Shown: piece after piece, positions 2,818 to 39,928 of the stretch
Position numbering within the stretch: position 1 is the first letter of the stretch
How the letters are laid out: each line of letters begins with the position of its first letter
Assembly (NCBI GenBank): GCA_004431415.1
Contig: QPMI01000369.1
Coordinates: 1-39,928, forward strand
Length of the DNA: 39,928 nt
Origin: Cyanophora paradoxa CCMP329
Taxonomy: Eukaryota; Plantae; Glaucophyta
Direction: 5' to 3'
Program-made: the position numbers and the translations under genes
The notes under the pieces: generated by a model
The model's database searches: none
Told to the model about the DNA's origin: nothing
The model's input: only the letters and a program-made list of their open reading frames with translations

Positions 2818-5215
2818 ATGCAGCGGGCAGCGTTCAGCGCGGCGGTGCCGGGCCTTCGTTTGCGGTCATCGTGGCCGCTTCGCTGCTCGTGCACGTCGAC
2901 GAGCGCCGGGGCGGCGTGTCGGACGCGCAGCGAGCTGGCGCGTGCGAGCGCGTCGCGCGGAGGCGTATCGTTGGCGTCCAAGTGGGTCGGCACGCTTCCC
3001 CAGCCGCTCCGGAGGCCCTGGTTCGGGCACAGCGAAGCCCGCCTGAGCTCGCTGCGGTGCGGGGTCACGATCCGCCCCGCCCGCGTGCCTCGCCCGACGC
3101 TCGCCTCGTGCGCGTCAGGTACGCGGTGCCGGGGATCATGGCGTGCGCGCGGCGGTCGAGCAGTGACCGGGCGCGAGCGAGGGCGGACGAGCCGATTGAC
3201 GCGGCGTACGGGGAGCCGGATCTGGAGGCGCTGGACGACGAGATGGAGAGCCCGAAGGCGGCGCAGGGGGCGGGCCCGGGGGACGTGCAGGCGCTGGCCT
3301 TCGCGAGCGCCTTCCACGCGCCGGTGATGTGGCGGGAGTGCGTGGAGAGCCTGGTGACGGAGGAGGTGCTGGAGGAGGGCGGCGTGCTCGTGGACTGCAC
3401 GCTCGGCGGGGGCGGGCACACGAGCGCCCTCCTCGCCGCCCTCTTCGAGGCGCGGCGGCCCACCCTCCTCGTCTCCATCGACCAGGACTTCCGCGTCCGC
3501 CCCCCACCGCCGCCCCGCCCGCCACACCGCGCCGCGCCGCCCCGCGCCCCGCCGAGCGAGCGGCGGGGGCGCAGGCGCTCGGGGTGTCGAACCGGCGGGT
3601 GGAGGCGCTGGCGCGGCGGCTCGAGGCGGGGGCCCGGCGGTGGAGCCCCCGGCGCCGGCGGAGGAGGCGGACCCCGAGAGCGAGGAGGCGAACGAGGAGG
3701 AGGGCGAGGGGGATGACTGGGGCGAGCTCGACGAGGAAGGGCGCCCGGCGGGGGCGCGGGGCGGGCCGATCGAGCACGTGCCCGTGCGGCACCGAGTCGA
3801 GCTGCGGGGCCGGCACGCGCTGCACGCCTGGCAGTCCGTCCACGCCAACTTCCGCGACCTCCACGCCGTCGTCCGGGTCCGCCCGCCCTCCCCGCGGCCC
3901 CCCTGCTCGCCGGCGGCGAGGCCGGCGCAGGCGGCGTGGGAGGCCGAGGCGGAGGCGCGCGGGGGCGAGGCCCTCCCGCCGGCGGGCCCGCGGGTGCGCC
4001 CGCCCGCCCCGCCCCGCGCGGCGCCGGGGCGGGACACGGGTCACGTGCGGGGCAGTGCGGGGGGTGCTGATGGACCTGGGGATGTCGAGCCACCACATCA
4101 ACGACCGCCGCCGCGGCTTCTCCTACGCCCGCCCGGGGCCCCTCGACATGCGCATGGACCCCACTAGCACCGAGCTCACCGCCTCGTCCGCCCCGCCCCG
4201 CCCCGCTTCGCCGGCCGCGCCCCGCCGAGGCGAGGCGGCGCCGGGCAGGTACATCGTGAACCGGTGGCCGGTAGACGACATCAAGCAGCTCCTCTACCGC
4301 CTCGGGGAGGAGCCCCGCGCCGGTGCCGCCCCGCCCCGCCCCGCGCCGCCGCCGCGCCGCCGGGGCGGGGTGCGAGGGGGCGGGCAGGGCCGATCGCGCG
4401 GGAGATGTCGCGGCGGCGGCCGCTGCGGAGCACCGTCGCCCTCGCCGAGGCCGTCAAGGCCGTCGTCCCCTGTTCGCCGTCCCCGCCCGCCCCGCCCGCC
4501 CCGCCCCGCCCCGCCCCGCCCCACGAGTGCCGAGCCGCGAGCGGGGGGCAGACAAGGAGCAGAACAAGTCCCTCGCCCGCGTCTTCCAGGTGCCCCCGCC
4601 GGCCCGCTTGCCCGCCCGGCCGGGGCGAGCGGGCGGCAGGCGCTGCGGATCCACGTGAACGACGAGCTGGCGGTGCTGGAGCGGGCGCTGGGGCAGGCGC
4701 ACGCCGTGCTCGCCCCGGCCGGCCGCCTCTCCGTCATCTCCTACCACTCCCTCGAGGACCGGCGGGTCAAGCACGTGCTCAAGACGGGGAACCTCGAGGG
4801 CCGCCCCGTGCACGACATGTACGGCAACCTCCTCTGCCCCTGGCGCCTCGTCTCCCGCAAGCCCCTCGCCCCCTCCGACGCCGAGATCTTCGTCCGCCCG
4901 CCCCGCCCCGCGCCCCCCCGACCCCGCGCCCCGCGCGCCGGCCTAAGGGGGCGGGGGGCAGCACAACTCGCGGGCGCGGAGCGCGCGGCTGCGGGTGGCG
5001 GAGCGCTCCGACCTCGACCTCGCCGCCTACGAGCAGCAGTACGGCCTCGGTAGGCCCCCCGCCCCGCACCGCCCCGATGGCCGTCCCGGGGTCCGCCTCA
5101 CGGGGCCGCAGTGGCGCTGGACGAGCCCAAGGTGCCCCGCATGGCCTCCGTCCGCCGCGCCCTCGACCGCCGCGGCTCCTCCGACTCCTCCGGCGGCCGC
5201 CGCGGGCGCCGGTAG
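2818..5215 (+). CDS. rsmH: 16S rRNA m4C1402 methyltransferase RsmH/MraW, probably plastid-targeted, multi-exon
   Basis: Motifs [93 protein letters not shown]-terminal extension MQRAAF. Needs a 1-nt correction near 3630. Stop TAG 5213-5215. Confidence 0.93.
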
Positions 5216-6593: not shown

Positions 6594-8355
6594 ATGGCGC
6601 GCAACAGCTGGATTTCGTCGTCGCAAATGTCCCTGCGCTCCGGCCTGCAGGAGAAGCCGGCCGCAAGGCCGAAGACGCCGAGGGGGGAGGCGGCGACGTC
6701 CGCGACGCCGCACACGGAGCGCTGGGCGCACCTGAAGCGGGACGTGGAGGCGAAGGTGACGGAGCAGACGCCGCAGCGCCTGCGGTTCGACGAGCCGCAG
6801 TCGAAGCGGACGCCCGGCGGGGCCGTCCAGCGGGGCCGCCACCCCCGAGTGGACCCCTTCAGCAGCTCCCTCGCCGGGAGCGCCCTGCTGCCCAAGGGCG
6901 CCGAGGCGCGCCGCTCTTCCTTTTCGCTTCCTTTTGGACGTGACGCGGGTTGGGCAGGCGGTGCCGACAGAGATGTGGACGCCGGCGTCGACGTGCCCGC
7001 GGCCGCTCCCGGGCGACCTCGCCGCCTACCGCCTCGAGCAGATGGGCAGCGCCTCCCGCCGCGGCTTCGAGCGCGACCGTGCGGCCCTACCCCGCCCCGC
7101 GCCCCCGGCCCGCTCCGGCCCGCCCCGGCCCGACGCCTCCCCGCAGCGATCCTGGACGGGGAGGAGCACACGGCGCGCCCCGCCTCACGCCGCCCTCCCG
7201 CCGCGTGCGAGGCGCCCGGCTGACGGCGGCGGCAGGAGCGGCCGCAGCGGAAGCGGTCGACGGGAACGCCGATCCTGACGCTGGCGATCCACGAGGGGGA
7301 GGACGACCTCACGCTCGCCCAGAAGCGCATGCTCCGCGCCAAGCCCGAGTACAAGGACGACTGCGCCGGCGTCCGCACCGACAAGGCCCGCCCCGCCGCC
7401 CCGCGCCCGCCGCCCCGCGCCGAGCGGCGCGCCGCGCAGGTGCGCGACGACCGGCGGATAAAGCGGTCGGCGGCGCCGCCGGTGACGCACGAGGATACGC
7501 GCTTGTACAACCGCAAGGTGGCGCGGGGCGCGCGGGGGGCGCCCGGCTGGGCGGGGGCCGACGGGGGGGCGCAGTTCACGCCGCTGAGCCACCTGACGAA
7601 CCCGCGGGACCCGATCCTGCAGGAGGCGCCCGAGTTCGACGCGAGCCTTGCGCGCGCCGAGTCGCTCCGCGTCTTTCGCGAGAAGCTCCACGACCGCTAC
7701 GACGACCAGCGGAACGAGGCCCGCCGCGCCCCGCCGCCCCGCGCGCCGGGGCCTGAGGGCGGGGGCAGGAGCGGGACCTCTTCCGGCTCTCGCCGGAGAA
7801 GCGGCCGCGGACGCCGTCGGAGCTGTACACGCAGCGCACGGGGGAGCGGCTCTTCGGCGAGGCCGCCATCGACGAGGCCGCCGTCGCGCACGGCCTCCGC
7901 ACCGCCGTCCCCCGGCCCCCGGGCCACGACGACGGTCCCCGCCCCGCCCCGCCCCGCCGCGCCCCGCCCCCCGCCGGCCCCGCTCACCCCGCCGCCAGTC
8001 CTCAAGTACCGCCACTCGGGCGGCATCTGCCCCGACGACTACGCCGTGCGCCCCGCGCACCCCCGCGCGGCCGCCAGCGCCGGCGGTCGCCGACTCGGGA
8101 ACAGATCGCGGACCGGCGGGGGGAGCGGGGCGAGTACGAGGAGCGGCTGCAGGACCTGGCGCGCATCAAGCTCGAGGTCGACCACGTCTACAACGGTGCC
8201 CCGCCCCGCCCCGCCCCGCCGCCGCGCGGGGGCCGAGGCGGGGCGCAGTGATCCGGGCGCGGGCGGAGAAGACGAGCAAGGCGCTGCGCGAGTTCCTCTA
8301 CGACAAGGCCAGCGCCGCCCGCGCCAACGCCGCCCTCCGCTCCATCTCCCCGTGA
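6594..8355 (+). CDS. hypothetical protein, multi-exon
   Basis: MARNSWISSSQMSLRSG... stays open across ~9 short GT/GC-AG introns to ...KALREFLYDKASAARANAALRSISP*, TGA 8353-8355. Codon bias matches the neighbouring genes. Confidence 0.7.
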
Positions 8356-14902: not shown

Positions 14903-17140
14903 ATGCTGGCCTTCCTGTGCTCCCTGCTCTGCACGCTGGTGCAGCCATTGCAACGCGGTCCTTGTGCGCCAGGAGGCGCGGCCGCGTGCCCGCAGCGCCG
15001 CGCGCACCAGGCCGCGGCGCCGGCGACCAGGTGGGCATCGCACGCGGCTCCGCGACCCACTCGCTCACACGCCGCGCAGCTTCGTGGTCAGCGGGAGCGC
15101 GAGGTTCGAGATCCAACCGGAGCGGAGGAAGCGCGGGCGCCCGAAGAGCACGCCGCCCCTTGCGGACGCGGAGGGTTCCGGCGCGCTAGCTCCGCGGGCC
15201 TCGCCGCGGCGGCGCGGAGGCCGCGAAGCGAAGGAAAGCGGTGAGCGGGCTGCGCGCTGCACGGACGGCGGGGGGGCCGACGGGGGCGCGTCAGAGGAGG
15301 AGCCGTCGCTGTGCGCGGTGCTGGAGGAGCGGCTGGGGATGGGCGTGGAGGAGCGCGGGGCGCTGCTGGAGCAGTGGCCGGACCTCGCCGCCGCCTCCGT
15401 CCCCGAGCAGATCGCCCCCGCCCTCGCCGCCCTCCTCAAGGTCCCCGCCCCGGCCCCCGCCCCCCGCCCCCCGCCGGCCGGCCGCTGACGGGGGGCGGGC
15501 GGCAGCTGTGCGGGGAGTCGAAGGAGGCGGCGCGCGCGGCAGTGGCGGCGCTCCCTCGGTTGCTGCTCCACAGCGCCCCCGACCTCCTCGCCCGCGCCGC
15601 CCTCTTCGACGCGTCCGCCCCGCCCGCCCCCCACCCCCGCCACCGCCGTTCCGCCGCCGGCGCGCCCACGAGGGCGGGGCGGCAGGCACGGGGTAGCGCC
15701 GGAAGAGTTCCTGCGGCTGGCGGCGCGGCAGCCGCGCGTGCTCAAGACCTCCCGCTCCATCCTCGCCTCGTGCCGCCCCCGCCCGCCCGCCCCGCCCGCC
15801 GCGCCGCGGGCGCCGAGGCGGGGCAGGCGGCTGCGGGTGTTCCACGAGGCGGGGTTCCGGGAGGGGAGCTGTGCGCGATCCTTGCGAGCGTGCCGGCGCG
15901 GCTGCGGTGCACGGAGGGGAGCTGCGGGGCAAGCTCGCCGCCCTCGCCGCCGCCGGGCCTTCCAGCCCCACGAGGCCCGCCCCCGCCCCGCCCGCCCCCA
16001 CCCCGGCGCCGGGGCGCTGAGGGCGGCGGCAGCTGCGGAGCCTGCTGCTGCGTGCCCGCGCGTGCTCTCCCGCAACGCCCGCCGCGACGTCGTCCGCCCC
16101 GCCCGCCCCCCGCCCCGCCCCGCCCCCGCCCGCGCCGGGCCGAGGCGGGGGCGCAGGGGCGGGCGGTGGAGGGTGTGCGGGAGGTGGTGGAGGGGGCGGG
16201 GCGGCGCGGGAGGCGGTGCTGCGGGACCCGGCGCTGCTGACGGCGCGGGGCGGGGCGGACGCCCTCCGCGCCCGCCTCGCCCTCCTCGAGGCCCAGGGCA
16301 TCGCCCCCGACGACGCCCGCACCATCCTCCGGCCCGCCCCCGCCCCGCCCCGCCCCGCTCCGCCCGGCCGGGGCGCTTACTCGCTGCGGCAGGCGGGAGC
16401 CGGCGATCCTGCGCCTCTCGAAGGAGAACCTCTCCCGCAAGATCGACTTCCTCCACGGTGCCCGCCCCCGGCCCCGCCCCCGTCCCGTCCCACCCCCTCC
16501 CGTGCCCTTAAAGTGCGCGCAGGGCTGGGGCTGGACGACGAGGGCCTCGCGCGGCTGCTGCGGGCGGCCCCCCGCGTCCTCGTCGCCTCCCTCGACGCCC
16601 TCGAGGCCCGCCGCCGCTTCCTCCGCGCCCGCGACGCCGGCGGCCTCGGCCTCTCCCGCCCCGCCCTCCTCGCCCTCCTGCGGGGCGCCCCGACGGTGCT
16701 CCTCGCCGACGTGGAGACGAACCTGCGGCCGAAGGCGGCGTTCCTGCGGGAGATGGGGGCCTCGCGGGCGGACCTCCTGCGCTTCCCCGCCTACTTCACC
16801 CGCTCCCTCCGCGCCCGCATCCTGCCCCGCGTCCTCTACCTCCGCGTCCGCCCCCCGCCCCGCCCCGCCCCGCCCCGCCCCGCCGGCTAACGAGGGGCGG
16901 GCAGCACCGGGGCCGGCGGCTGCCGGGGCTCTCGCGCCTGTTCGGCACGACGGACGCCGTCTTCGCGCGCACCGTCGCGGGGGCGAGCGAGGAGGACTTC
17001 GCCGCCTTCGCCGCCGCCCTCGCCGCCCAGCTCGCCGCGGGCGAGGCCCGCACGCCCCCGCCCGCCCCCCCGCCCCACAGCCCGCCGAGGCCGCGAAGGC
17101 CCCAGACGCCGCGGAGGCCGCGGAGGATGCAGCCCTCTGA
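14903..17140 (+). CDS. mTERF family organellar transcription-termination-factor-like protein
   Basis: Repeated P-x-[VI]-L helical units, e.g. APTVLLADVETNLRPKAAFLREMG, FPAYFTRSLRARILPRVLYL, EPAILRLSKENLSRKIDFL. N-terminus MLAF (start uncertain); stop TGA 17138-17140. Confidence 0.8.
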
Positions 17141-22802: not shown

Positions 22803-25800
22803 CTAGCCAGAGTGTCCGCGGGGAGGCGCATTACTCTCCTTAGGGGGCCACGCAGGGCCCGGCCGGCCAGCTTGCTGGTGGGCTGGGCCCGCGGCCGCGG
22901 CGGCCGCAGTGTACATTCCCACACTTGTAGCCCGGACCTGCGTTTTGAGTACGTGTCCAAATGCGGCGAGCGTACATGTACATGAACAGCTTGAGCTTAA
23001 GATGCATATAATCTTTCCAGCCTATGTACTTTTCGCATTCACATGACAACACATCCTGCCTCGTTCTCAAGGCTAGTGTCGCTTGGCACCCCAGAACTTA
23101 CAGTTTGAGGCGGAGCAGCGGCGAGATTGCCAGGGGCCCTCCTCTGCACAAACAAGAGTAAATAAGAGTGCAGGCTGAAGTGAAACTGAAAAAAACACAC
23201 CACCACCTCGCTGATCTCGACTTCATCATCTTCATCGCTTATCTCAATGATCTCCTTGTTGGGAACCTTGGAGGAAGGCTGGCTCACTAGCTTCGAGGGC
23301 TGCTGAGGCTGCTGAGCTGATTGCTTCTGCTTTGCCTGAGGCCTATTATCCTTGCCAGGCTCATGGACTCTAGATGCTGGAGAAGGATACTTTGCCAATG
23401 CCTCATCGATTGCTTTCTGTAGTGCAGCAAGCTGAACTGGCCGGAGGTTTGCCTGCAGAATCTTCAGTGTTGCTTCTTTCCCCTGCAATAATACAGATTG
23501 CCGTTAATTGTGATAAACTGAGGCGATGAAGTAAATGCTTACGATCACAACCGCTATCTGTGCGACGAGTTCTGTTGCAGCTGTCCGTACTTGTGTTTGT
23601 GGGTGATTGAAAAGTTTCCCGCAGTACTCCAGAATGCTGAGATGAATTCCTGTACATTGAATGATGAGATGAAAGTGATTGCAAACAGCCAACCACTGCC
23701 TGGTACCTTCCTTTGGACTTTCAGAGCTGGCACCCTCCGAAACAATCTGCTTCAGTGTGTCGACCTGGAAGCACATCAGTTCAAACGGTCAGATGGGAAG
23801 GGCAAGATGGCATGACCTGTCCAATGCACATCCGACTTGACCCAGCTCCTGTTTGCCCATCCAGCATGATTTTGACCACATAATTCTGACCGACATTCTT
23901 TGCTCGACTGAGGGCCGCAAGAGCCTGCAATAAAAAGGCATGTGAGAACCATCCTGCCAATGAGAGCCCTTACTGACCCATATTGATGCTTCTCTCAGTC
24001 GAGCATTGGTATCACCAACATGGTCTGTTATGCTTGGGTTCATTTCGACAGCACCAAGCCACATGTGGAGAGCCTTGCTGTCCCAGGAAGAGAGTTGCTC
24101 TGCACTCAGTTGCAGGGCCCTCAGGGATGCAAAGTAAACCTGTGAGGAACAGTCTTTCAGACAGAATGCACAAGATGGAAAGTAACGCTAACCCTAACCC
24201 TAACCTGAGGGTTCTTGTCTGAAAGCCCAATCCTCAAAAGAGCTGCTGTAGCGACACAAGACCGCGAGAAACCTTTGGTTACGAGTTGCATGGAGGAACT
24301 TCTGTGGACATCGGAGGAGCGGTCATCATGCCCCCCTTTTCGTGCTCTTGTCCCTCCAGCTGGACTCTGAAGAGTAACACTTCCAGTGCGAAGAAGGCCC
24401 GTTGCAGTTTGAAGGGCTTTCTCTCTGGTCGCCCATGATCCTGCAGTGATGCCTTCTGCAACCTGAGGGTTGCTGTAAGAGGTTGGAGTTGCCACATCAT
24501 TGCAGACAAAATCATACCTCCACGCCGAAAACCTCGGATATGATGGATATCTCGTCTGCATGCTCACCACCTGTCTTTCGAGGAGACGAGCTGGTTTGAT
24601 TTGAAGTCTGCTCTTGAAGGCTGAGCTGCTCAAGGGCTGATGCTTGCATCGGACGAATCGGCCTGTCTTCTGGTACTGTTACAGAACTTGCTGCATGCAG
24701 GGCTGGGGCTGCTAGAGGCTCAAGAGGTGGGTCGGGTTCACGGCGCTGTCCAGCACTCATTGGTGTTGGAACATGAAGACCTACTGGGGGCTGAGCTGGT
24801 GCACGGATGGGGCTGTCAACGGGGTCAAACTCTCTGCAAAATCAATTAGGAATCATGTCCCTGCGAAACTACTCAAGAGTGGGACAATGCACTCACGCAT
24901 CACTTATGCGGTCGGCCAGATGTGCAAGCCTGTCCCCAATGAGCTTTGCTGTGTGGTAGTCCTCCACCCTGAGGGCAGCGTGAAGTTCTCTAAGCAAATG
25001 GTCGACCTCATCTTCAATGGCATGAAGCATTTCTTGCTTCCCCTTCAACTGGCTTGCAGCTCCAAAGTCTTCATTGCTTACTGCAGCAACCTTTGCACGC
25101 TCCAATGCAGTCATGCGATCGGCAATCAACACCTTGTGAAATGTGTAAGATGCCTGCAAACGTGATTGATAGCATATACAAACCTTGATCTTGTGCGAGG
25201 CAGGATTCTGCACATGGCCAGCATCGGACGTGGAACCGGGCTGACGACCATTCGAAACACCAGCCTCTCGGCTTTTCAGGAGGGCACCTTGCATGACACG
25301 ATCGACTTCTGACTTGCACTTGCTGGCTTCCTCAAAGTTCTCCTCGTTCAGCGCTGCCAGCTTGCGCTCCTCCAACGTCTGAATCATTTGGGACGTCATC
25401 GTTAGAAAGAATGAAGGCAGAAAAATTGAACACGGATGGCACCTGTACAGCTGCAAGTGCTGCTGCAAACCAGTCAACAATGATTCGAAGACGGGCTGCC
25501 TCCGTATAATCCTCTGCATCAGTAGCTGCAATCTTCAAGTCAACAACTTTGTCGCGCTGCTGCATTAACTGCATAATGCTATCTGTTGCGGCGAATTGAG
25601 GCGTCGAAAAATCTGCTCCTGCCTCCCGAGTTGAAATTACATCATGCTGCAAGCTTGCAGACAAGTTGCCCTTGCGCGCGGAGGCAAGTGCTGCATCCTG
25701 GGCCAAGACACTTTGTAGAATGCCCATTTCCGCCAACACTGCGTCGGCTTCCGATTCGAACTCTGTGTCCCTGGCCTTTGTCCTCGACTTCGAGCCGTGA

Positions 25801-26357
25801 GACATGACAGGCGAGCCAACAGCATGGAGAGATTGAAGCCCAACTGCCGAGCCGAAATATGTCAAAGATACACGAGAGTGAGAATGAAAAAGAGAATATT
25901 AGATACTTTGTTCGCAGGGATTCAAGGCATCTTGAAAAGCGCCAGCGAAGACAAATTTGATGTACGACACGTCCAGAGGAGCCGGAAGGGACAGGCGTCC
26001 AGTGTTGTTCGACGAGGCGGTGAACTGAATAGAGCCCACGAGAGCGAACGTGGCCCCCGCCCACCCCGCAACTTCGCGCTGTGCATCCCCGATGAAGATG
26101 TCTATTACTGTTGGTGCTCGATGATCGGCGGCGACAAGCTGGATCTCCCGGACATTGGCTCGTGGTCTGAGCTCAATTACAAGCTCCACAGGAAACGGAG
26201 GAAACCTGTGCATGACTCAACGCCGTGTGTCACCCAGCACCACCCATAGCGCTGACCTTTGGCTGCACCACCCAGCGCGCCCCGTAGTGAGCTGAGAGGC
26301 GGGTGCATCTCGATCCTCGCTAGAAACGTGTACGACAATGAACGGGTGAGGGGCCAT
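22803..26357 (-). CDS. CEP104: CEP104/FAP256-like centrosomal/ciliary-tip protein (jelly-roll domain + UvrB/C-like coiled-coil motifs + TOG), multi-exon
   Basis: MAPHPFIVVHVSSEDRDAPASQL..GWCSQRFPPFPVELVIEL..VREIQL..IDIFIG..YIKFVF..N..Q.VGLQSL follows the CEP104 N-terminal domain. Repeated K..A...EDY/F..A motifs; TOG-like segments (SWATREKAL, DTNARLRE, HPQTQVRTAA). Putative stop 22803-22805. Confidence 0.75.
24188..24205 (-). repeat. short telomere-like (TTAGGG) tract at an intron donor
   Basis: + strand ctaaccctaaccctaacc; the minus strand reads CAG|GTTAGGGTTAGGGTTAGCG. Confidence 0.6.
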
Positions 26358-26648: not shown

Positions 26649-29600
26649 ATGGAGCACGCGGCCGCCTTCACGGCGGGACCCCCGCCGCAGCTCGGCGGGC
26701 AGCGTGGACAGCGTGTAGCGGCGCGCATCGCTCCGGCCCAGCCGGAGATCCGCAGCTCGGCGCCCGCCGACCCGGCCTCGCGGCAGCACGTCGGCTTCCG
26801 CCGGACGAATGCGCTCGATGCGAAGTTCCTGGCACGTAGCCAGCCGCGGCCGCTCTTCCAGGCGCACCGCGCTCAGCTCCCGAATCACAACATGGGCTTC
26901 GCCGTCGCCCAGGCTGTGAGCGCGCCGAAGGCGCCCTCTCCGCCTCCCCAGAACCCGGCATCGGACCCTCTTAGCAGCCGCAATCAGCGAAGCATCTATC
27001 CCCTGTCCGCCGTTGTCGGCCAGGATTCTATCAAGCTCGGTGCGCGCTCGCGCGCGTCCAGCTGCACGTCCTGGCTGCCGCTGCCGCTGACGTGCATCCG
27101 CTCGTTCCGTCCGCTATCGCAGCGCTCATTCTTGCGGCGATCGATCCGGCGCTGGGCGGCGTCGTTATCGCGGGCAAGCGCGGCACGGCGAAGTCGGTGA
27201 TGGCGAGGGCGATCCACTCGGTGCTGCCGCCCATCGAGGTGGTGAAGGACACCACGTGCAACTGCGACCCGCGTGCCCCGGGCGACTGGGACACCTTCAC
27301 CCTCCGCCAGTACTTCCCCGACGGCTTCCCGGACGCCCCCAAGCCCGCCGCTGCCGCCGCCGCCGCCCCCGCCACCCCGTCTGCCTCCACGAGCGCCGCG
27401 CCGGCCAAGCCGGCCGACCTCTCCGCCGACCTCCGCGAGCAGTTCATCTCCGTCTGGGTCCGCCCGCCCCGCGCCCATCGCCCCGCTCCACGCCGAGCGC
27501 TCACGCGGCGCACGCGGCGCAGAACTCGACGGAGAGCGCGCCACAGGTGGCCGCAGAGGATGCCACCGGCGCCGGCGACGCGGCGGATGCGGCCCCAGCG
27601 AGCACCCTTAGCGGCGTGGAGGTCCCGACGGCGGTCATCCCGGCGCCCTTCGCGATGGTACCGCTGGGCGTGACGGAGGACCGCCTGCTCGGCTCGGTCG
27701 ACGTCGAGCAGTCCATCCGCAAAGGTGCACCCGCCCCCTCTGCCTCCCCAGCTCCGCCAACGCCGACTCGGGCCGGCAGGCGAGACCGTCTTCCTCCCCG
27801 GCCTGCTCGCCGAGTGCAATCGGGTGCGCGAGCGGCGTTGCGCCGCGGGGCGGGGCGGGGCGGGGCGGCTGAGGGCAGGGCAGGGGGTGCTGTACGTGGA
27901 CGACATCAACCTGCTCGACGAGAGCCTCTCCAACCTCCTCCTCGCCGCCATGTCCGCCCCGCCCCGCCCCGCCCCGACCCGCCTGCGCCCCGCCCCGGCC
28001 GACGCGGGGCGGGGCAGCTCGGAGGGGCGGAACCTGGTGGAGCGCGAGGGCGTCTCGTTCCAGCACCCGTGCCGGCCGGTGCTGATCGCGACGTTCAACC
28101 CGGAGAGCGGGCCGCTGCGGCCGCACCTCATGGACCGCTTCGCCATCGCGCTCTCGGCGGACGGCCTGATGTCGATCGAGGACCGCATCGACATCGTCCA
28201 GCGCGTCACCCACTTCACCGACAATTCCGCTGGTTTCGTCGCCGAGGTGCCCCCCCTCCCCTCCCGAGGGGGCCGCGGGCGGGGCGGGGGCGGGGGCGGG
28301 GGCCGAGGTGCGGGGCGGGGCGCAGTACGAGCAGGAGGTGGAGGACCTGCGGACGACGATTGTCATCGCGCGCGAGTTCCTCAAGGAGGTCACCATCTCC
28401 AGCAAGCAGATCGAGTACCTCACCACCGAGGCGGCCCGCGCCGGCTGCGAGGGCCACCGCGGCGAGGTCCCCGCGCATCCGCCTCGCCTCCCGCCCGCGC
28501 CGCCGGGGCCCGAGCCTGGGGCGCAGATCTTTGCGGTGCGCGTGGCGAAGGCGCACGCCGCGCTCGGCGGCCGCGACCGCTGCAACGCCGACGACCTCGC
28601 CGTCCGCCCCGCCCCGCCCCGCACCGCCCCGCCCCGCCCCCTGCCGCCCACGCCGGCGCGGCGGGGCGCAGGTCGCCGTGAAGCTCGTCATCCTGCCCCG
28701 CGCCACAGTCGTGGACGCACAGCCCCCGCCGCCTCCTCCCCCTCCCCCGCCGCCGCCGCCGCCGCAGGTGCGGGGGCCCCTTCTCGCCCTCTCCCCCGCC
28801 CCCCGGGCGTGGCCGACGCGGGGCGGGGCGCCGGGCAGGCGTCGGAGCAGGCGGAGGACGAGAAGAACGAGGACGAGAACGAGCAGGAGGACGACGACAG
28901 TGCGCCGGGCCCGCTTGCCGCGCCGGCCGCGGGGCGCGCCGCCGAGGCGGGGGCGGGGGCGCAGAGGAGGAGGAGGACGAGGAGGAGCAGGAGCAGCAGG
29001 CGTCGCCGGAGGTGCCGGAGGAGTTCATCTTCGACCCGGAGGGCGTCGTGATGGACAACGAGATGCTCGCCTTCGCCCAGGCCTCCCGCGGCCGCAACTC
29101 CGCCAAGTCCGGCAAGCAGGGCATCATCTTCTCCATGGACCGCGGCCGGCCCGCCCCGCCCCGCCCCGCCCCGCCCCGCCCCGCCCTGGGCCCCGCGCGA
29201 CCCGCCCCCGCAGGTACATCAAGCCGGTGCTGCCGCGCGGCAAGTTCGGGCGCATCGCGATCGACGCGACGCTGCGGGCGGCGGCGCCGTTCCAAAAAGC
29301 GCGGCGGCTGCGGAACCCGGGGCGCAAGGTGGTGATTGACAACATCGACGTGCGGCACAAGAAGCTGGCGCGGCGGGCCGGCGCGCTGGTCATCTTCGTG
29401 GTGGACGCCTCGGGCTCGATGGCCCTCAACCGCATGCAGGCCGCCAAGGGCGCCGCCCTCCGCCTCCTCACCGACGCCTACCAGTCCCGCGACCAGGTCG
29501 CCATCGTCGTCGTCCAGAAGGCCCGCCCCCGCCCCCGCCTCCGCCCCCGCCCCGCCGCCGCCTGACGGGGGCGGGGCAGGACGCTGCGGAGCTGCTGCTG

Positions 29601-30891: not shown

Positions 30892-33800
30892 ATGTATGCC
30901 CGGTTCGATCCGTCCGGTCGGACGGAGGCGGCAACGGGCACGATGTACGGCAGCGGCCAGCAGTGGGGTCAGTTCGGCAGCGGGCAGTGGGGCTCGAACA
31001 GCAATGCCGAGCCCGTCACCACGCCGCTCTACACGGCGTCGTATTCGCAAAGCTATGTAGCGGCGGCTGGCCCGTCTACCGCGTCGCCCACTCCTGCTCG
31101 GCCGTCCGCCGCGCGCTCGCCGGAAATCTCTCGCAAGTCAGCTGGCAGCGTCGGCTTTTTCGATCTCAAGTCGCGCAGTAACGAGAACGACGGCGCTGAG
31201 GACTACAGCCGCCTGCGCAAGTGCACAGTCTGCGCTCGAACTTGCTCGGAACTTGTCTAACACTCAGCTGCACAGGTTGATCGACAAGCGGTGAGCTGCA
31301 CAGGTTGATCGACAACGCTATGTTCGATATGCATAGGCCGTGACAAGCGGCGCCGGCCGTGATGTCGTTCGCTCCATCGCAATCGCTGAGCGGCTGCCGC
31401 CTCGCTTTGCCGTCGCGCAGCTTCGCGCCATACAAGTTGAACGTGCGGCGGGCGGAAGTCTTCTTGCGGGTGTTTTTTCGCTTTTTTTGCTTTGCTGCAG
31501 AGCCCTTGGCGAAGGCTGACAGCGAGCTCAGGTCCAGAAGAAGCAGCTGCAGGCGATGCAGCTCTACCGGGAGCTCGTCATCTACGCGGCCTACATCACG
31601 CTCTTCTTCTGGCTCGCGATGACCATCCTGCCGCTTCACATCTCGAACGACCAGGACGACTCGCTCGTCGGCGCCGGCGCCTACTTCAACGTGCCCCGCA
31701 TCGGCGCGACGCCTCCGGAGGACAGCCCCTGGGACTCCGTCAACAACGCCGACGTCCGCCCCCGCCCGCCCCCCCGCCCGCCGTCCCCGCCCGCCCAACG
31801 GGGCGGCGCAGGACGTGTGGGGCTATCTGAAGAAGTTCGTGGCGGGCCCCCTGACGGGGCCCGGCGAGGGCCCCGCCCAGTTCCGCTGGTTCCGCCAGCA
31901 GATTGGCGCCCTCCGCGTCCGTCAGGTGCGCCCCGCGCCGCCCCGCGCAGGCCGGCGGGGTGGCCGGCGAGGGGGCGGGGCAGGTACGGGGCAACGGGGG
32001 CCGCTGCGAGGCGCACGGGCGGGAGTACAGCTGCTTCGGCGGCTTCACCGACGCCGGGGAGGAGCGGGCGCCCTTCGGCCCCGGCGGCCGCTTCCAGTGG
32101 CAGGGCGGCCTCACCGAGGTCCGGCCCTCCCCCAAGGTCCGTCCCCGCCCCGCCTCGCGCCCGCCCCGCCACCGCGGGCGGGGCCGACGGGGCGGGGCAG
32201 TTCATGCGGGACGACTCGTACGCCTTCAGCTACGGCACCGGGGGGTACGTCGTCGACATCAGCGCCGCCGGGGGGCCGGAGGCCGTGGTGGCGGCCCTCT
32301 CGCAGCTCCAGGCCGACAAGTTCATCGTCCGCCCGCCCCGCCCGTCCCGCCTCCGCGTGGGGCCTGAGGGCGGCGGGGCGGGCGGGGGGCAGGACGAGGC
32401 GACGCGGGTGCTGGTGGTGTCGGTGAACCTGTACAACCCGCACACCGACTCCTACATCGTCGCCGAGCTCATGGCCGAGAGTGCGCGCCGCCCAACCCCC
32501 GGCCCCCGCGAGGGCGGCCCCGCCGGCGGCCCCCGACGCCCCACCCGACGCGCCGCCGCAGTGCCGCCGACGGGGAAGCTGCTCACGAGCGTCCGCGTTG
32601 AGACCCTCAACATCCAAGCCGTGCGCCCCGCCGCGCTCTTCCCCGCCCGCCGCGCACTCCCCTCCGACGCGCGGGCGCGGGCAGTTCGACTCGGCGGTGG
32701 TGTCGGTGCTGGGGGTGGTCTTCGTGGTGTTCACGCTGGGGTACGTGCTGCACGAGTTCAAGCAGGCGCGGGACCGGGGCCTGGTGGGCTACCTCAACGA
32801 CTCGTGGAACTTCTGGGACATCACCAACCTCATCATCATCGCCTGGATGCTCGTCCCCACCCTCCGTCCGCCCCCGCCCCGCCCCGCCCCCAGGCCCCCC
32901 GCCTTAGCCGGGGCCGGCAGGCTACCGCTCCTTCTGCATGTCGATGCTGGCGGCGCTCGAGCGCCCCGGGGCCCCCTCCGTCCGCCCCGCCCCCCGCCCG
33001 CCGGCGCCGAGGCCTGCGCGGGGGCGAGCTGGGTGGGGGCAGGAGTACCTGGCGCTGGACGGGGGCACGCGGATGCTGCGGGACGTGAAGCAGCTCGCCG
33101 CCTTCGCCATCCTCCTCTGCTGCGTCCGCATCTTCAAGGCCCGTCCCCGCCCGTCGCCCCGCCCCCCGACCCCGGCGCTCACGGAGCCGGGGCGGCAGTT
33201 CTTCGAGCTGAACCCGCGGCTGTCGGTGCTGACGAACACGGTGGGGCGGGCCGTCCCCGATCTCGCCGCCTACCTCGTCATCTTCGTCATCATCTTCGCG
33301 TCCGCTCCCCGCCGCAGCCCGCCCGCACCCGGCCCCTCACGCCGCCGCCGCCGCCCGCGCGCGCAGGGGGTACGCCTTCTTCGCGTGGATCGTGTTCGGG
33401 TACCGGATCGAGGCGTTCCGCTCGTTCTACTCGTCGTTCGCGCGGCTCTTCGGGAACCTCGGGGGCGGCCTCGACATCGGCGAGCTCACGGACGCCGCGC
33501 CCCGCGCCGGCGTCTTCTTCTACTTCTCCTTCATCGTCCTCGTCTCCCTCATCCTCATCGTCCGCGCCCCCGCCCCGCGCGCCGGCGGGTGCGCGGGGCG
33601 GCTGAGCGGGGGGCGGGCAGAACATCTTCATCGCGATCGTGGGGAAGTACTACACGGAGGCGGGTGCGGAGGCGATCCGGAGCGAGGAGGAGTTCGCGAA
33701 GGAGCTGAGCGAGGAGGACCGGACGTCGCCCTACCACAAGCTGCGCCACCTCCGCGTCACCGTCCTCCTCGAGAACGAGGGCGACGAGCCCGACCGCGAC

Positions 33801-36800
33801 GCCCACGTCCGCCCCGCCCCGCCCCCGCCGCCCCCCGCGCCCCCCACGCCCCTAACCCCGGCGCCCCCGCAGGGCCGCCCCATCGGCGGCCGCCGCCTGC
33901 CGCAGGGCGCCCTCATGCGCCTCTTCATCAGCCGCCGCAAGGCGGGGCCCAGCCGCGGGCCAGGCACCCCGGGCACTGTCGACCCCGGCGTGCGCCCTGC
34001 CCCCGCGCCCCCTCGACCCCGCGCGCCCGGATCGCCGACGGCTGCCTGGCAGCTCTTCGCGTCGAATGCCGCGATGCCGGTCGTCCAGGCCTCGTCCGCC
34101 CCGCCCCGCCCCGCCCCGCCCCGCCCCGCCCCGCCCCGCCCAGCGCGGCCTCACGGGGCGGGGGGCGGGGGCAGGGCGGCGGGGCACCCGATGCACGTGC
34201 GGTTCCTGCCGGAGGTGCTGGGGATTGGGGACGAGTGCGAGCTGGCGGGGGAGGGCGGCGGGGCGGCCGAGGCGCGCCTCCGGGTGGAGCGGGTGAGCGC
34301 GGGGACGGACGGGAGCTGGTACGTGGACCTCTCGGCGGTGCGGGAGTCGGTGGTCTCGCAGGGGGCCCACGTGCGCATCCCCTGGGGCGCCACCCTCCGC
34401 GCCCTCGCCTCCTTCTACATCCAGGACCCCGAGCTCGTCATGAGGCCCGCCCCGCCCGCCCCGCCCACGCCGCCCACGCCCCCTGCCCCGCTGAGCGGTC
34501 TGCGCGCAGCCGGCGGACGAAGAAGCTCTTCGAGGAGTTCGGGGTGGAAGCGGTGGCGCCGCTGGTGCCCGACGAGGCGCTCGAGGCGCAGATCGTGGAG
34601 CTGGCGGCGCGCAACGCGCACCTCGCGCGGCAGGCGGACGAGACGCTGAAGCGCAAGTCGTTCCGCCTCGACGAGCTGCTGCGCGTCATCCGCGACCTCG
34701 ACACCCTCGCCTCCCGCCACGAGAACCGCGCCTTCGCCGAGGGCACCACCGCCCAGGCACCCGCCCCCCGCCCCCCGCCCCGCGCGGGGCGCTGAGGCGG
34801 GGGCGGGGCAGCTGGTGCGGGAGGCGGTGGAGATCGACGCGCTGTACCGGCAGGCGATGGCGCTGGGGACGGGCCAGGCCGAGCGCCTCCTCGACGACCT
34901 CCGCCGCGACGCCGAGGCCGCCGCCGCCGCCCGCCGCCCCGCCGCCCCCGGCGCCCTACTCCCCGCCGCCATCCGTCCCGCCCCGTCGGGCGCCAAGGCC
35001 CGCTCCCCCCTCCCCCTCCCCGCGGGGGCGGGGCGGGAGGCCGAGGCGGGGCGGGCGGGGCGCAGGGGGCGGAGGAGAAGCGGGAGCGGGAGGTGCAGCT
35101 GGACGTCTACCGCGCCCTCTACGCCCGCCTCGTCGCCGCCGCCTCCCAGGCCCGCCCCGCCCCGCCCCGCCCCGCCCCGGCGCGGCACGGCACGGCGCGA
35201 GAGCCGCGCGCGCAGTTCGACCGGCGGGTGCACGAGCTGTGGCTGGGGGTGAAGCACGGGTCGGGGAAGGGGGACGGGTCGGTGCTGCCGGAGACGGTGC
35301 TCGACTCGCTGCGCTTCGATGAGGTCGTCGACATCGTCCGCGCCCAGGCCCTCGTCTACGCCCCCGCCGACGACGCGCGCCCGCCCCCCGCCCCCCGCGC
35401 CTTGCGCCCCGGCCCGCCGTCGCGGGGTCTGACGCGGGGCGGGCAGTGCACGGAGGTCGACTTCAAGCGCGAGGCCGTCCGCTTCCTCGCCGGCTTCCCC
35501 CTCGCCTGCTTCGAGCCCCTCGTCCAGGCCCGCCCCCGCCCGCCTCGCCCAGCCGCTCCCCGCCCGAGGCCCCCGCAGGAGCAGGAGCGCGTGCGCCCGT
35601 ACCTGCCGCGGCCCTTCGACGTCGATCGCATCGCCGACTCCGCCAAGGACCCCGCCCGCGTCCTCGGTCCGCCCCCGGCCCCCGTCCCGCCCCGCCCCTC
35701 GGCCGGCGCTGACGGGACCTTGGTGGCGGCAGGGGGGGTGCGGCTGAGCAAGGGGGCCCCCGCGGCGAGCAGCCTCTTCCAGTCGATGCGCAGCAGCTCC
35801 GCCGCCGTCCACGCCCGCTTCTCCTCCCCGCGTCCGCCCGCCCCACCCGCCTCCCGCCGCCCCGAGCGGCGCCTCACGGGGCGGCAGAGGGCGACGTGGC
35901 GTCGCAGGCGCTGCAGAAGCTCCCCGACACGATCACGGACGCGCGCCCCGCCGCCCGCCCGCCCGCCCCGCCGCCGCCGGCCGCTGACGCGGGGGCGCAG
36001 CTGATGGCGGTGGTGATCCACGACGGCTGGGCCTTCAACAAGATCAAGGACGGCTGGCGGTCCGCAAAGCCCCCCCGTCCTGCACCGGTGCGGGCGGCTG
36101 ACGCGTACGGGGCCCCGGGCGGCGCAGGCACGGCCCCGGGCGGACGAAGCCGCACCACGAGTGCCTTGTGCCGTGGCGGGACCTGGAGCACGTGGCCGGG
36201 GGCGGCATGGACGACGACCGCAACCAGGCGCTCAACGTGCTGCGCGCCGTCGTGTGCCTGGGGTACGACTTCGTGGAGCCGGAGGAGCAGGTCACCGTGG
36301 ACGAGGTGCTCGAGATCATCCCCGGCCAGGAGGAGTTCCACCGCGACGGCCGCATCCAGCCCGTCCGCCCCGCCCCCGCCCGCCTGCGCCCTGCGGGGTC
36401 CGACGGCTGATGGCTGACGGGCAGCACTACTGGCTGATGCGGGTGCGGGAGGGGGAGGAGCTGCCGCCCGCCATGCGCGAGCTCGTCGACCTCCTCGCCA
36501 AGGCACGCCTCCCCGGCCCCGCCCCGGCCCCGCCCCCGCCTGACCGCCCCGCAGAACGCCCACGACGTCCGCCCCCGCGCCCCGCGCCCCGCTCCCCTCC
36601 CGGGGAACCCACGCGCGGGGCCGCGGTAGGTGTGGGCGAAGAAGCGGAAGGACGAGGGGTACACGTACGGGGAGGTGACGGACGCGGACCGGAAGCAGCA
36701 CTCGCAGCTCATCCCCTACGAGTGCATGTCCGACGCCGAGCGCTCCTACGACAAGGGCACCGCCGAGGGCCCGCCCCCGCCCCCGCCCCCGCCCCGCGCT

Positions 36801-36950
36801 CCACGTGCCGCCCCCGCTGAGGCGGCCCCCGCAGTGACGATCCGGATGGTGATGGCGTGCAAGTGGCGCATCGTGCCGCAGCGGCGGCAGCGCTCGTGGG
36901 CGCAGCGCGCCACCATCGCCCTCGGCATCCCCGCCTCCTGGTCCCTATGA
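30892..36950 (+). CDS. PKD2/TRPP-like cation channel with two C-terminal ryanodine-receptor (RyR) repeat domains (PKDRR-like), ~30 exons; 5' exons uncertain
   Basis: TRPP features: RELVIYAAYITLFF, IGALRVRQVR..C, YGTGGYVVD, FIDEATRVLVVSVNLYNP, YLNDSWNFWDITNL, LSVLTNTVGRAVPDL, FRSF..SF..LF, LINIFIAIVGKYY. C-term: VIHDGWAFNKIKDGWRHG...HECLVPW and LLAKNAHDVWAKKRKDEGYTYGEVTD...HSQLIPYECMSDAERSYD. Stop TGA 36948-36950. Confidence 0.88.
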
Positions 36951-38108: not shown

Positions 38109-39928
38109 TCAGGGGCGGGGCCGGCCGTCCATGCGGGCCATGCGGGCGAGGGCGGCGAGGCTCTCGTCCCCACCGAGGCCGTCCTCCTGCGCCCCGCTCG
38201 AGCCCGTTCGAGGCCGGCGGGGGCGGGGCGGGGCGCACGCGGGCGGCCTGGAGCTCCTCCTCGGCCTCGCCGGCGAGGCCGTCCCGCAGGAGCCAGCTCA
38301 CCAGCGTCCGCCGCAGCTTCGCCCCCGGCGGCGCCCCCCGCTCCGCCGCCCCCGCGCGGAGGCGGGCGGCGACGGCGCGCGCCTCGGCGTGGCGCCCGCA
38401 GCGGCAGAGCGCCTCCACCAGGCTCGTGTACGCGTTCTCCTGCACCCCGGCCGCCCCCCACTGCCCCCGACCCGCCCCACCCGCCCCTCAGCGCCGGGGC
38501 AACGCGCAAGGGGTGCGGGGAGGGGGCGGGCCTGCCGGGGCGGCGGGGTCGTCGCCGGTGAGCTCGGCGAAGAGGGCGAGGGCGGCCTCGGGGCGCCCTC
38601 CGTGCCCGCACGCGTCCACCACCACGCTCGCCGTCGCCCCGTCCGCCCGCACCCCTGCCCCGCCCGCCCCTCAGCGCCACAGCAGGGCGGGGGCGGGGCT
38701 GAGGCGGGGCGGGCCGCGGCGCTGGAGGCGGCGGAGGGCGGCGAGGGCGGCGTCGAGGTCGCCGGCGCGCGAGTGCGCCTCCACGAGCCCGTTCATCGTC
38801 GCCGCGTCCGGCCGCGCCCCCGCCCGCTCCAGCAGCCCCGCCGCCCGCTCCGCCCCCGCCGCGTCCCCCGCTTCGCGTACCTGCCGCCCCCGTCGCCGTC
38901 GCCGTCGCCGTCGCGCGGGCCGCGCGGCGGGCGGCGGGGCGCACGCGTCGAGGAGGGTGTTGAAGGGGAGGGCGGGGAGGCGGGCGCCCCGGGCGGCCGC
39001 CTGCGCCAGGGCCCGCTCCGCGGCCTCGGGGTCGCCCCGGCGCGCGAGGTCGCCGGCGCGGGCGGCGGCGGTGGCGGCCTCCGCGTCCCCGAAGCCTCGC
39101 GCCGCCGCCTCCTCCTCCAGCTCGGCCGCGAGGGCGCGGGAGCCGCGGGCGAGGGCGGCGCGCAGCAGGCGCCCGTAGAGGAAGCCGTCCACCGCCGCGT
39201 CGGGGGCGCCCCGCACGAGGTTCGCCGCGGGGGCGACGCGCCCCGCCGCGAGGAGCGCCTCCACGAGGGGCGTCAGGGTGCGCGTGCTCTCGGGGACGCC
39301 CAGCGCCGTCATCTCGGCCCGCAGCGCCAGCGCCTCCTCGACGTCCCCGGCCCGCGCCGCCCCGCCGATCAGCGCCGCGAACGCCGCCCCCTCCACCTCG
39401 TGCCCTGCACCCCGCATCTCCTCCCGCACCTGCCGCCCCGCCCCCGTTGGTCGCCGTCGCCCTTGCGGGAGGCTGCGGGGGCGGGCATGGGGCGGGGCGG
39501 GCCTGCAGAGCGCGGGGCAGGCCGCCGGGGCGCGCCGCGTGGCCGGCCATGATCGCCTGCGAGGAAAGATAGAGAGGTCAGCGGGCGCGGGCTGGAGGGC
39601 GGGGAGGGGGAGCACGTGGAAGGTCTCGGGGCCCTCGGGGAGCCCCGCGGCGGCCATCTCCGCCCGCGCCGCCGCCACCGCCGCCTCGTCCCCCGCCTCC
39701 GCGTGCTGTCCCCGCGCGTCGGGCGCAGCCGCACGGGAGGGAGCGGCGGGGCGGCGGGGCGCACGCCGGCGAGGAGGAGGCGGAAGAAGCGGGCGCCCGG
39801 GCGGGCGCAGCGCTCGCGCATGCGGGCGCGGAGGGCGGCGAGTTCGGGGGCCATGCCGCGCGCCGCATAGAGGCCGGCGAGGAGGCCCCACGCCTCCTCG
39901 TTCGGGCCCTGCATCGCCCCAGCGCCTC
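38109..39928 (-). CDS. P-type pentatricopeptide repeat (PPR) protein, 5'-partial
   Basis: ~35-aa repeats: AFAALIGGAARAGDVEEALALRAEM, PFNTLLDAYAKRGD, PDAATMNGLVEAHSRAGDLDAA, NAYTSLVEALCRCGRHAEA. Stop TGA 38109-38111. Confidence 0.88.

Follow-up and report, generated by a model that had tools for sequence, protein, structure and literature searches.

Splice-site-locked polarity of G-ending and C-ending synonymous codons in exons of a GC-rich Cyanophora paradoxa contig

The window analysed is the whole of a 39,928-nucleotide stretch of DNA from Cyanophora paradoxa CCMP329 (assembly GCA_004431415.1, contig QPMI01000369.1, positions 1 to 39,928 of the forward strand). It is very GC-rich and contains genes on both strands, in which almost every exon starts with G-ending and ends with C-ending synonymous codons, with a sharp switch between them. 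The introns run the opposite way. The features of main interest are listed below.

31362-36950, forward strand: polycystin-like channel gene of 30 coding exons, almost every one of which is G-then-C
33621-33806, forward strand: RNA-confirmed exon with G-then-C polarity (AUC 0.99)
34175-34444, forward strand: exon with boundaries in agreement with spliced RNA contigs
34510-34756, forward strand: RNA-confirmed exon with G-then-C polarity (AUC 0.88)
34757-34811, forward strand: GC-AG intron upstream of the index exon, with a C-rich 5' part and a G-rich 3' part, holding the C-to-G reversal
34812-34871, forward strand: G-block of the index exon (34812-34997), 13 of 13 fourfold codons ending in G
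34872-34997, forward strand: C-block of the index exon, with 22 consecutive C-ending fourfold codons and 30 C against 2 late G overall
34998-35065, forward strand: GC-AG intron downstream of the index exon, C-rich then G-rich
16523-16845, forward strand: single mTERF exon with two full waves (G-C-G-C) and no internal splice signals
4640-4891, forward strand: RsmH (MraW methylase) exon, clearly G-then-C with a weak second G patch around 4755-4790
38947-39429, reverse strand: 483-nt PPR exon in which the wave oscillates two to three times
552-942, reverse strand: predicted last coding exon with two waves, which ends in a C-run although no donor follows, the next ~190 nt remaining C-rich

The reading frame of the index exon starts at 34812. 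Its first 13 fourfold codons all end in G, as stated in the original prediction; the first C-ending fourfold codon is at 34872, and 22 C-ending ones follow before a CTA. The probability that the first 13 are all G, given 15 G and 30 C, is 1.4e-9. The boundaries of this exon and of the exons 33621-33806, 34175-34444 and 34510-34756 agree with spliced RNA contigs from three studies, while a DNA run holds the unspliced form. The 15 joints listed from the RNA contigs can all be resolved to GT-AG or GC-AG. All of them are reproduced by the gene model, as is the length bookkeeping of the RNA contigs, and since the pattern holds in the RNA-confirmed exons an artefact of gene finding can be rejected.

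Of 76 internal exons in the window, most have an AUC of 0.85-1.0 for G sites lying 5' of C sites. The pooled statistic is 0.338 against 0.000 +/- 0.016 for within-exon shuffles of all fourfold sites (z = 21), and z = 18 is obtained against shuffles within codon families, so that chance or a codon-family artefact can be excluded. G3 is about 85% next to acceptors and 4-12% next to donors in all length classes. Donors lie in C-blocks in 58/63 cases and acceptors in G-blocks in 52/63. Blocks delimited with an HMM placed 48 of 56 C-to-G reversals in annotated sequence within introns and 79 of 80 G-to-C reversals within exons. The introns are 43-119 nt long, 38% of them are GC-AG (24 of 63 donors are GC), and they begin C-rich after a GYCCGC-type donor and mostly end G-rich before CAG, without a pyrimidine tract. 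The original prediction that a second, non-protein pattern is overlaid on the code and phase-locked to splice sites is thus supported, although its remark that the polarity is always relative to the sense strand is uninformative, because a G-then-C block reads the same on both strands.

The switch is discrete, is placed differently in each exon and scales with exon length. One-step purity is 0.88 against 0.834 for a common gradient (z = 5.7), and there are fewer runs (z = -8.7). The G-block has a median of 162 nt in exons of 230-320 nt. No motif was found at the switch, CpG and GpC density is flat along exons, and there was no Rfam hit in the window. Synonymous sites are usually taken as nearly free; here about nine in ten G/C choices at fourfold sites are predicted by position in the exon alone. 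Conservative amino acid choices bend in the same direction, with E:D ratios of 126:56 against 78:88 (p = 3e-5) and Gly:Pro ratios of 114:44 against 73:67 (p = 5e-4). The pattern warns against treating codon usage or dS in this lineage as position-independent, and the rule could sharpen gene prediction in a genome whose authors call its models hard to predict (PMC6704402).

In some long exons the wave continues without an intron. Exon 16523-16845 has switches near 16567, 16678 and 16774 and is one uninterrupted mTERF match, whereas exon 4640-4891, for which the original prediction claimed a similar repeated wave, has only a weak second one. Hidden introns in the multi-wave exons were rejected, since the Pfam matches (mTERF, MraW methylase) run unbroken through them and no acceptor-like site is present. 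Predicted last exons still end in C-runs without a donor, and first exons mostly start with G.

A fixed period was not found. The suggestion that many exon+intron units measure 140-175 bp was not confirmed; the units span 104-524 nt with a median of 201 nt (IQR 139-254), and only 17% fall in that range. The spacing of reversals ranges from 101 to 635 nt and the periodogram is broad with no peak. Eight of 9 exons of 230-320 nt carry one wave where two nucleosomes would fit, and units of 104-130 nt, shorter than a nucleosome core, carry a full wave. These observations argue against nucleosome phasing (here taken as dyads at the G-to-C switches and linkers at introns), one of the two mechanisms originally proposed. 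The mean unit of about 200 nt is close to a nucleosome repeat, and the asymmetry, G-then-C in exons and C-then-G in introns on genes of either strand, has the dyad-type symmetry of the nucleosomal signatures of fission and budding yeasts, which also overlie coding sequence and bend codon and amino acid use (Quintales et al. 2015, PMC4422121). That signature, however, has the fixed length of a nucleosome and is mainly A/T, while the present one has no fixed length and follows exon-intron borders. This explanation is considered the least likely.

The other mechanism originally proposed, a chain of pre-mRNA hairpins used for exon definition, is not supported as a stabilised structure and is also very unlikely. 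Folding showed no extra stability relative to shuffles, neither for introns alone (z = -0.12) nor for introns +/-45 nt (z = -0.06), and splice-site accessibility was unchanged with unrestricted pairing. The lengths of the supposed arms across an intron, the C-block of exon n and the G-block of exon n+1, are uncorrelated (r = 0.00), as are their skew strengths (rho = 0.03), and no single preferred partner appears in the pair-probability classes. Predicted intron structures are nevertheless end-to-end hairpins more often than shuffled ones: 83% against 61% of pairs join the two halves, and the ends pair in 81% against 53% (p = 3.5e-7). Between-block pairing rises when within-block pairing falls; pairing shifts from short range to block-to-block.

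Segregation of G from C lowers predicted short-range self-pairing. With pairing limited to 30 or 50 nt, real units fold more weakly than G3/C3-permuted ones (-87.3 against -95.4 and -104.7 against -112.1 kcal/mol, p ~1e-7) and than polarity-inverted ones (-96.7). Introns alone at span 20 give -17.5 against -24.3 (p = 4e-15), and exons alone at span 30 give -52.5 against -59.5 (p = 7e-9), near the fully sorted optimum of -49.3. The donor at -3..+8 is more open, 0.50 against 0.47 permuted and 0.43 inverted (p = 0.04 and 0.005), but accessibility of the acceptor region does not change. The effect grows with GC and is stronger in genic windows. The structural gain is modest, about 8% of the local folding energy and 2-3 points of unpaired probability, and it vanishes when long-range pairs are allowed. 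Any segregation of G from C lowers local pairing by arithmetic, so this effect may be a by-product.

The tentatively preferred explanation is that the pattern is maintained mainly by selection on the pre-mRNA, not by chromatin, with the introns setting the phase. In RNA that is 80-90% G+C, mixing G and C gives dense short hairpins; separating them removes short-range self-pairing, keeps the 5' splice site in a locally open stretch and puts the pairing-prone reversals in mid-exon and mid-intron. Given the polarity of the introns, G-then-C is the only exon polarity that adds no reversal at a splice site. Because polarity only has meaning relative to introns, the process must see pre-mRNA or DNA, not mature mRNA, and translation-level explanations such as tRNA reuse were set aside since the polarity also continues into the introns. 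That selection for this effect is the cause is inferred only, from thermodynamic models and one 40-kb window, and a diffuse benefit would have to drive single sites to 88-95% purity. The waves in terminal exons and the reversals in long exons without an intron also speak against it.

Alternatively, the blocks may be a splicing code read by proteins, G-rich RNA around acceptors and C-rich RNA around donors being binding platforms for splicing activators that would replace the missing polypyrimidine tract and support weak GC donors. Exons would then stay monotonic because an internal C-to-G step would look like an intron. The blocks run continuously across both splice sites, and skew context separates true donors from decoys (AUC 0.84, and 0.75 among PWM-passing decoys). 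For acceptors it does not: the AUC is 0.63 overall and 0.39 among decoys that pass the PWM threshold, which also counts against the preferred explanation. Pseudo-introns inside exons number 3/1/12 in real sequence, 6.2/1.7/19.5 when permuted and 13/4/30 when polarity is inverted, but this test is weak (p 0.03-0.6) and biased by the gene finder used. The shift in amino acid usage is as with exonic enhancers elsewhere (PMC3787667). However, the blocks reach 100-170 nt from the splice site, far beyond the ~70 nt range of known enhancers, there is no compensation between donor type or strength and skew, and terminal exons show the pattern too. This explanation appears doubtful.

Equally doubtful is a strand-asymmetric mutation, repair or gene-conversion process whose polarity flips at introns, for example through single-stranded DNA exposed in R-loops or heteroduplex repair spreading both ways from breaks in introns, and which protein coding resists at codon positions 1 and 2. 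The symmetry under reverse complement is expected for a two-sided DNA process. All three codon positions move the same way in order of their freedom (pos3 +0.40 to -0.61, pos2 +0.01 to -0.32, pos1 +0.25 to +0.10) and even amino acids shift, terminal exons and long exons without introns carry waves, there is no motif at the switch, and GC3 near 98% shows that a strong non-coding force already acts on this genome. On the other hand, fourfold sites next to splice sites are more skewed than the adjacent intron, the freest sequence (C 0.88 against 0.715, G 0.74 against 0.595; p = 5e-12 and 3e-7), which a uniform regional mutation bias does not predict. Unannotated DNA of equal GC shows weaker segregation, purity of 88-95% would need a tenfold G<->C rate asymmetry with sharp borders, of which no description is known to us, and no mechanism is known that would place the flip at introns.

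A more speculative and likewise doubtful reading is that strand composition in this genome behaves as a self-organising two-state system, in which introns pin a C-state on their 5' side and a G-state on their 3' side and each exon settles into one G-domain and one C-domain with a freely placed wall. The driver would be either an undescribed need to strip short-range structure from ultra-GC-rich pre-mRNA or an undescribed intron-anchored strand-asymmetric conversion process, either strong enough to rewrite Glu/Asp and Gly/Pro choices in proteins.

If splicing or RNA folding drives the pattern, the alga shows how intron recognition can work without a pyrimidine tract and with 38% GC donors; if a mutational or conversion process does, that process is a new kind of strand asymmetry tied to gene structure.

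No description of this pattern in Cyanophora was found in the literature searched, and the 2019 genome paper does not mention skew. One protein search with a ChlD exon gave no close relative usable for comparison, the best hits being at most 74% identical and of unknown origin. Short GC-rich vertebrate introns appear to use G-rich tracts as splicing signals (McCullough and Berget 1997), the G triplets probably lying inside the intron near both ends, while here the 5' intron part is C-rich and the signal extends deep into the exons. Transcription-linked GC skew and R-loop zones at gene ends (Ginno et al. 2013, PMC3787257) share a G excess on the coding strand of transcribed DNA, but such skews probably form one block per gene end, whereas here the sign alternates once per exon-intron unit. 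The same polarity is published in weak form for the brown alga Ectocarpus, where C is avoided at the 5' ends and G at the 3' ends of exons at fourfold sites, amino acid usage shifts as well, and the skew was read as splice-related (Wu et al. 2013, PMC3787667). There it is a statistical trend near exon ends seen over thousands of exons, while in the present window it is visible in single exons, is exon-wide with one sharp switch per exon, continues into the introns and sometimes repeats inside long exons.

The window is 72% G+C, and many stretches reach about 80%. The intron density, short introns and GC content fit the published genome description of Cyanophora paradoxa, with 67.6% GC, 9.2 introns per gene and a mean intron length of 86 bp (PMC6704402). 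Contigs of three RNA-like studies show 15 listed precise joints in the + strand gene at 31.4-37.0 kb, while a DNA-like run holds the unspliced form. After shifting of ambiguous cuts, all 15 are GT-AG or GC-AG introns of 51-72 nt. A small dynamic-programming gene finder trained on these joints reproduces every one of them, as well as the length bookkeeping of the RNA contigs, and gave models for eleven genes. RNA support exists for one gene only, and the exon models elsewhere are predictions of this gene finder. Searched one by one, single exons of these genes match MraW methylase (RsmH), tetrapyrrole methylase, mTERF, the VWA domain of a ChlD-like protein, a polycystin-type channel and PPR. 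Long stop-free frames occur on both strands over the same DNA, with 107 ORFs of at least 150 aa. This may bear on the bidirectional overlapping ORFs that were found puzzling in the 2019 genome paper (PMC6704402), although extreme GC would produce them without any function.

The switch from G-ending to C-ending synonymous codons in the original prediction is confirmed. In exon 34812-34997 the first 13 fourfold codons end in G, the first C-ending one is at 34872 and 22 follow in a row (P = 1.4e-9 given the composition of the exon). Of 76 internal exons of at least 45 nt, most have a run of G-ending fourfold codons followed by a run of C-ending ones. The pooled polarity statistic is 0.338 against 0.000 +/- 0.016 for within-exon shuffles (z = 21). 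G3 is about 85% beside acceptors and 4-12% beside donors in every exon length class, and the switch point moves with exon length. Each exon has its own sharp switch and does not follow a common gradient; one-step purity is 0.88 against 0.834 (z = 5.7), and runs are fewer (z = -8.7). Codon positions 1 and 2 drift the same way, and so do the amino acids. The Glu:Asp ratio is 126:56 in 5' thirds against 78:88 in 3' thirds (p = 3e-5), and Gly:Pro shifts likewise. All of these figures come from a single 40-kb window. The same polarity has been reported as a weak trend at exon ends in Ectocarpus by Wu et al. 2013 (PMC3787667), while no description was found for Cyanophora or of an exon-wide, switch-like form.

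The 63 confident introns are 43-119 nt long. Their first 30 nt or so are C-rich (C about 0.72) and their last 20 nt or so are G-rich. GC rather than GT donors are found in 24 of the 63 (38%), for example in the introns at 34445-34509, 34757-34811, 34998-35065 and 35375-35446. The donor consensus is GYCCGC, there is no pyrimidine tract, and a CTGAC-like motif sits 10-30 nt before the CAG acceptor. A two-state block model places 48 of the 56 C-to-G reversals that fall in annotated sequence inside introns, and 79 of 80 G-to-C reversals inside exons. Donors lie in C-blocks in 58 of 63 cases and acceptors in G-blocks in 52 of 63. A G-then-C block reads G-then-C on the opposite strand as well, so the point made in the original prediction, that the polarity always follows the sense strand, carries no information. 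It is the phase relative to introns that carries information.

Waves were also found in exons without an internal intron. The long exons of interest are as follows.
16523-16845, exon with the order G-C-G-C and switches near 16567, 16678 and 16774; one unbroken mTERF match with no acceptor-like site
38947-39429, PPR exon of 483 nt that oscillates
552-942, - strand, predicted last exon with two waves
4640-4891, RsmH exon with only a weak second wave
3119-3498 and 29214-29520, other long exons, each carrying a single wave
Two of the three multi-wave exons encode helical repeat proteins (mTERF, PPR), and internal duplication of a G-then-C unit or loss of an intron could explain the extra waves. 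In the predicted last exon at 552-942, GAG (Glu) runs are followed by GAC (Asp) runs. The C-rich block continues for ~190 nt past the stop codon. Either a 3' UTR feature or an unrecognised intron follows.

No fixed period was found. Exon-plus-intron units have a median of 201 nt (IQR 139-254, range 104-524), and only 17% lie in the 140-175 nt range into which the original prediction had placed many of them. The spacing of C-to-G reversals is 101-635 nt, and the skew periodogram is raised broadly from 140 to 500 nt without a peak. Eight of nine exons of 230-320 nt hold one wave, and units shorter than a nucleosome core hold a full wave. This argues against nucleosome phasing, one of the two mechanisms originally proposed, which is considered very unlikely although the symmetry resembles the nucleosomal signatures of yeasts (PMC4422121).

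The other proposed mechanism, a chain of pre-mRNA hairpins, was examined by thermodynamic prediction of RNA folding. Introns alone and introns with 45 nt of flank are no more stable than mononucleotide shuffles or shuffles that keep each half (mean z about 0). With unrestricted pairing, splice-site accessibility is the same in real and G3/C3-permuted exons. The C-block of one exon and the G-block of the next are uncorrelated in length (r = 0.00) and in strength. A stabilised hairpin chain is therefore not supported, and functional hairpins are regarded as an unlikely cause.

Short-range folding, likewise predicted, gave a different picture, and this effect appears to be new. With base pairs limited to 30 or 50 nt, real exon-intron-exon units fold more weakly than synonymously permuted ones (-87.3 against -95.4 and -104.7 against -112.1 kcal/mol, p about 1e-7), and also more weakly than units with inverted exon polarity (-96.7). 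Exon flanks are more open (0.486 against 0.461, p = 2e-5), as is the donor site (0.50 against 0.47 when permuted and 0.43 when inverted), while the acceptor region does not change. Introns alone at span 20 give -17.5 against -24.3 (p = 4e-15), and exons alone at span 30 give -52.5 against -59.5, close to the fully sorted optimum of -49.3. Real introns fold end to end more often than shuffled ones, the ends pairing in 81% against 53%. The depletion of short-range structure rises with GC and is stronger in genic windows. Segregating G from C thus trades many small hairpins for block-to-block pairing, and given C-then-G introns, G-then-C exons are the arrangement that adds no reversal at a splice site.

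Fourfold sites beside splice sites are more skewed than the adjacent intron, with C 0.88 against 0.715 and G 0.74 against 0.595, which speaks against a uniform regional mutation bias. Intron composition may, however, be set by (CCCCG)n slippage; many intron 5' parts are short (CCCCG)n or (CCGCC)n tandem arrays, among them those at 34096-34141, 4481-4522, 7937-7983, 16853-16884 and 29146-29186. A pure splice-signal reading is weakened by several results. Skew context helps to tell true donors from decoys (AUC 0.84) but not acceptors (0.63, and 0.39 among strong decoys). Real polarity roughly halves the number of pseudo-introns inside exons relative to permuted order, but this test is weak and biased by the gene finder used. 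Predicted terminal exons keep the pattern. Selection at the pre-mRNA level, anchored by introns, is therefore only tentatively preferred. A splice code read by proteins and an intron-anchored, strand-asymmetric process of mutation or conversion both remain possible, each being about half as likely as the preferred reading.

An island of ~3 kb at 22900-25900 departs from its surroundings in composition. It has about 50% GC and a CpG observed/expected ratio of 0.3-0.7, and is set among sequence of 67-80% GC with CpG o/e above 1. Minus-strand ORFs in the island lack GC3 saturation, and one of these (24893-25531) has a UvrB/UvrC motif.
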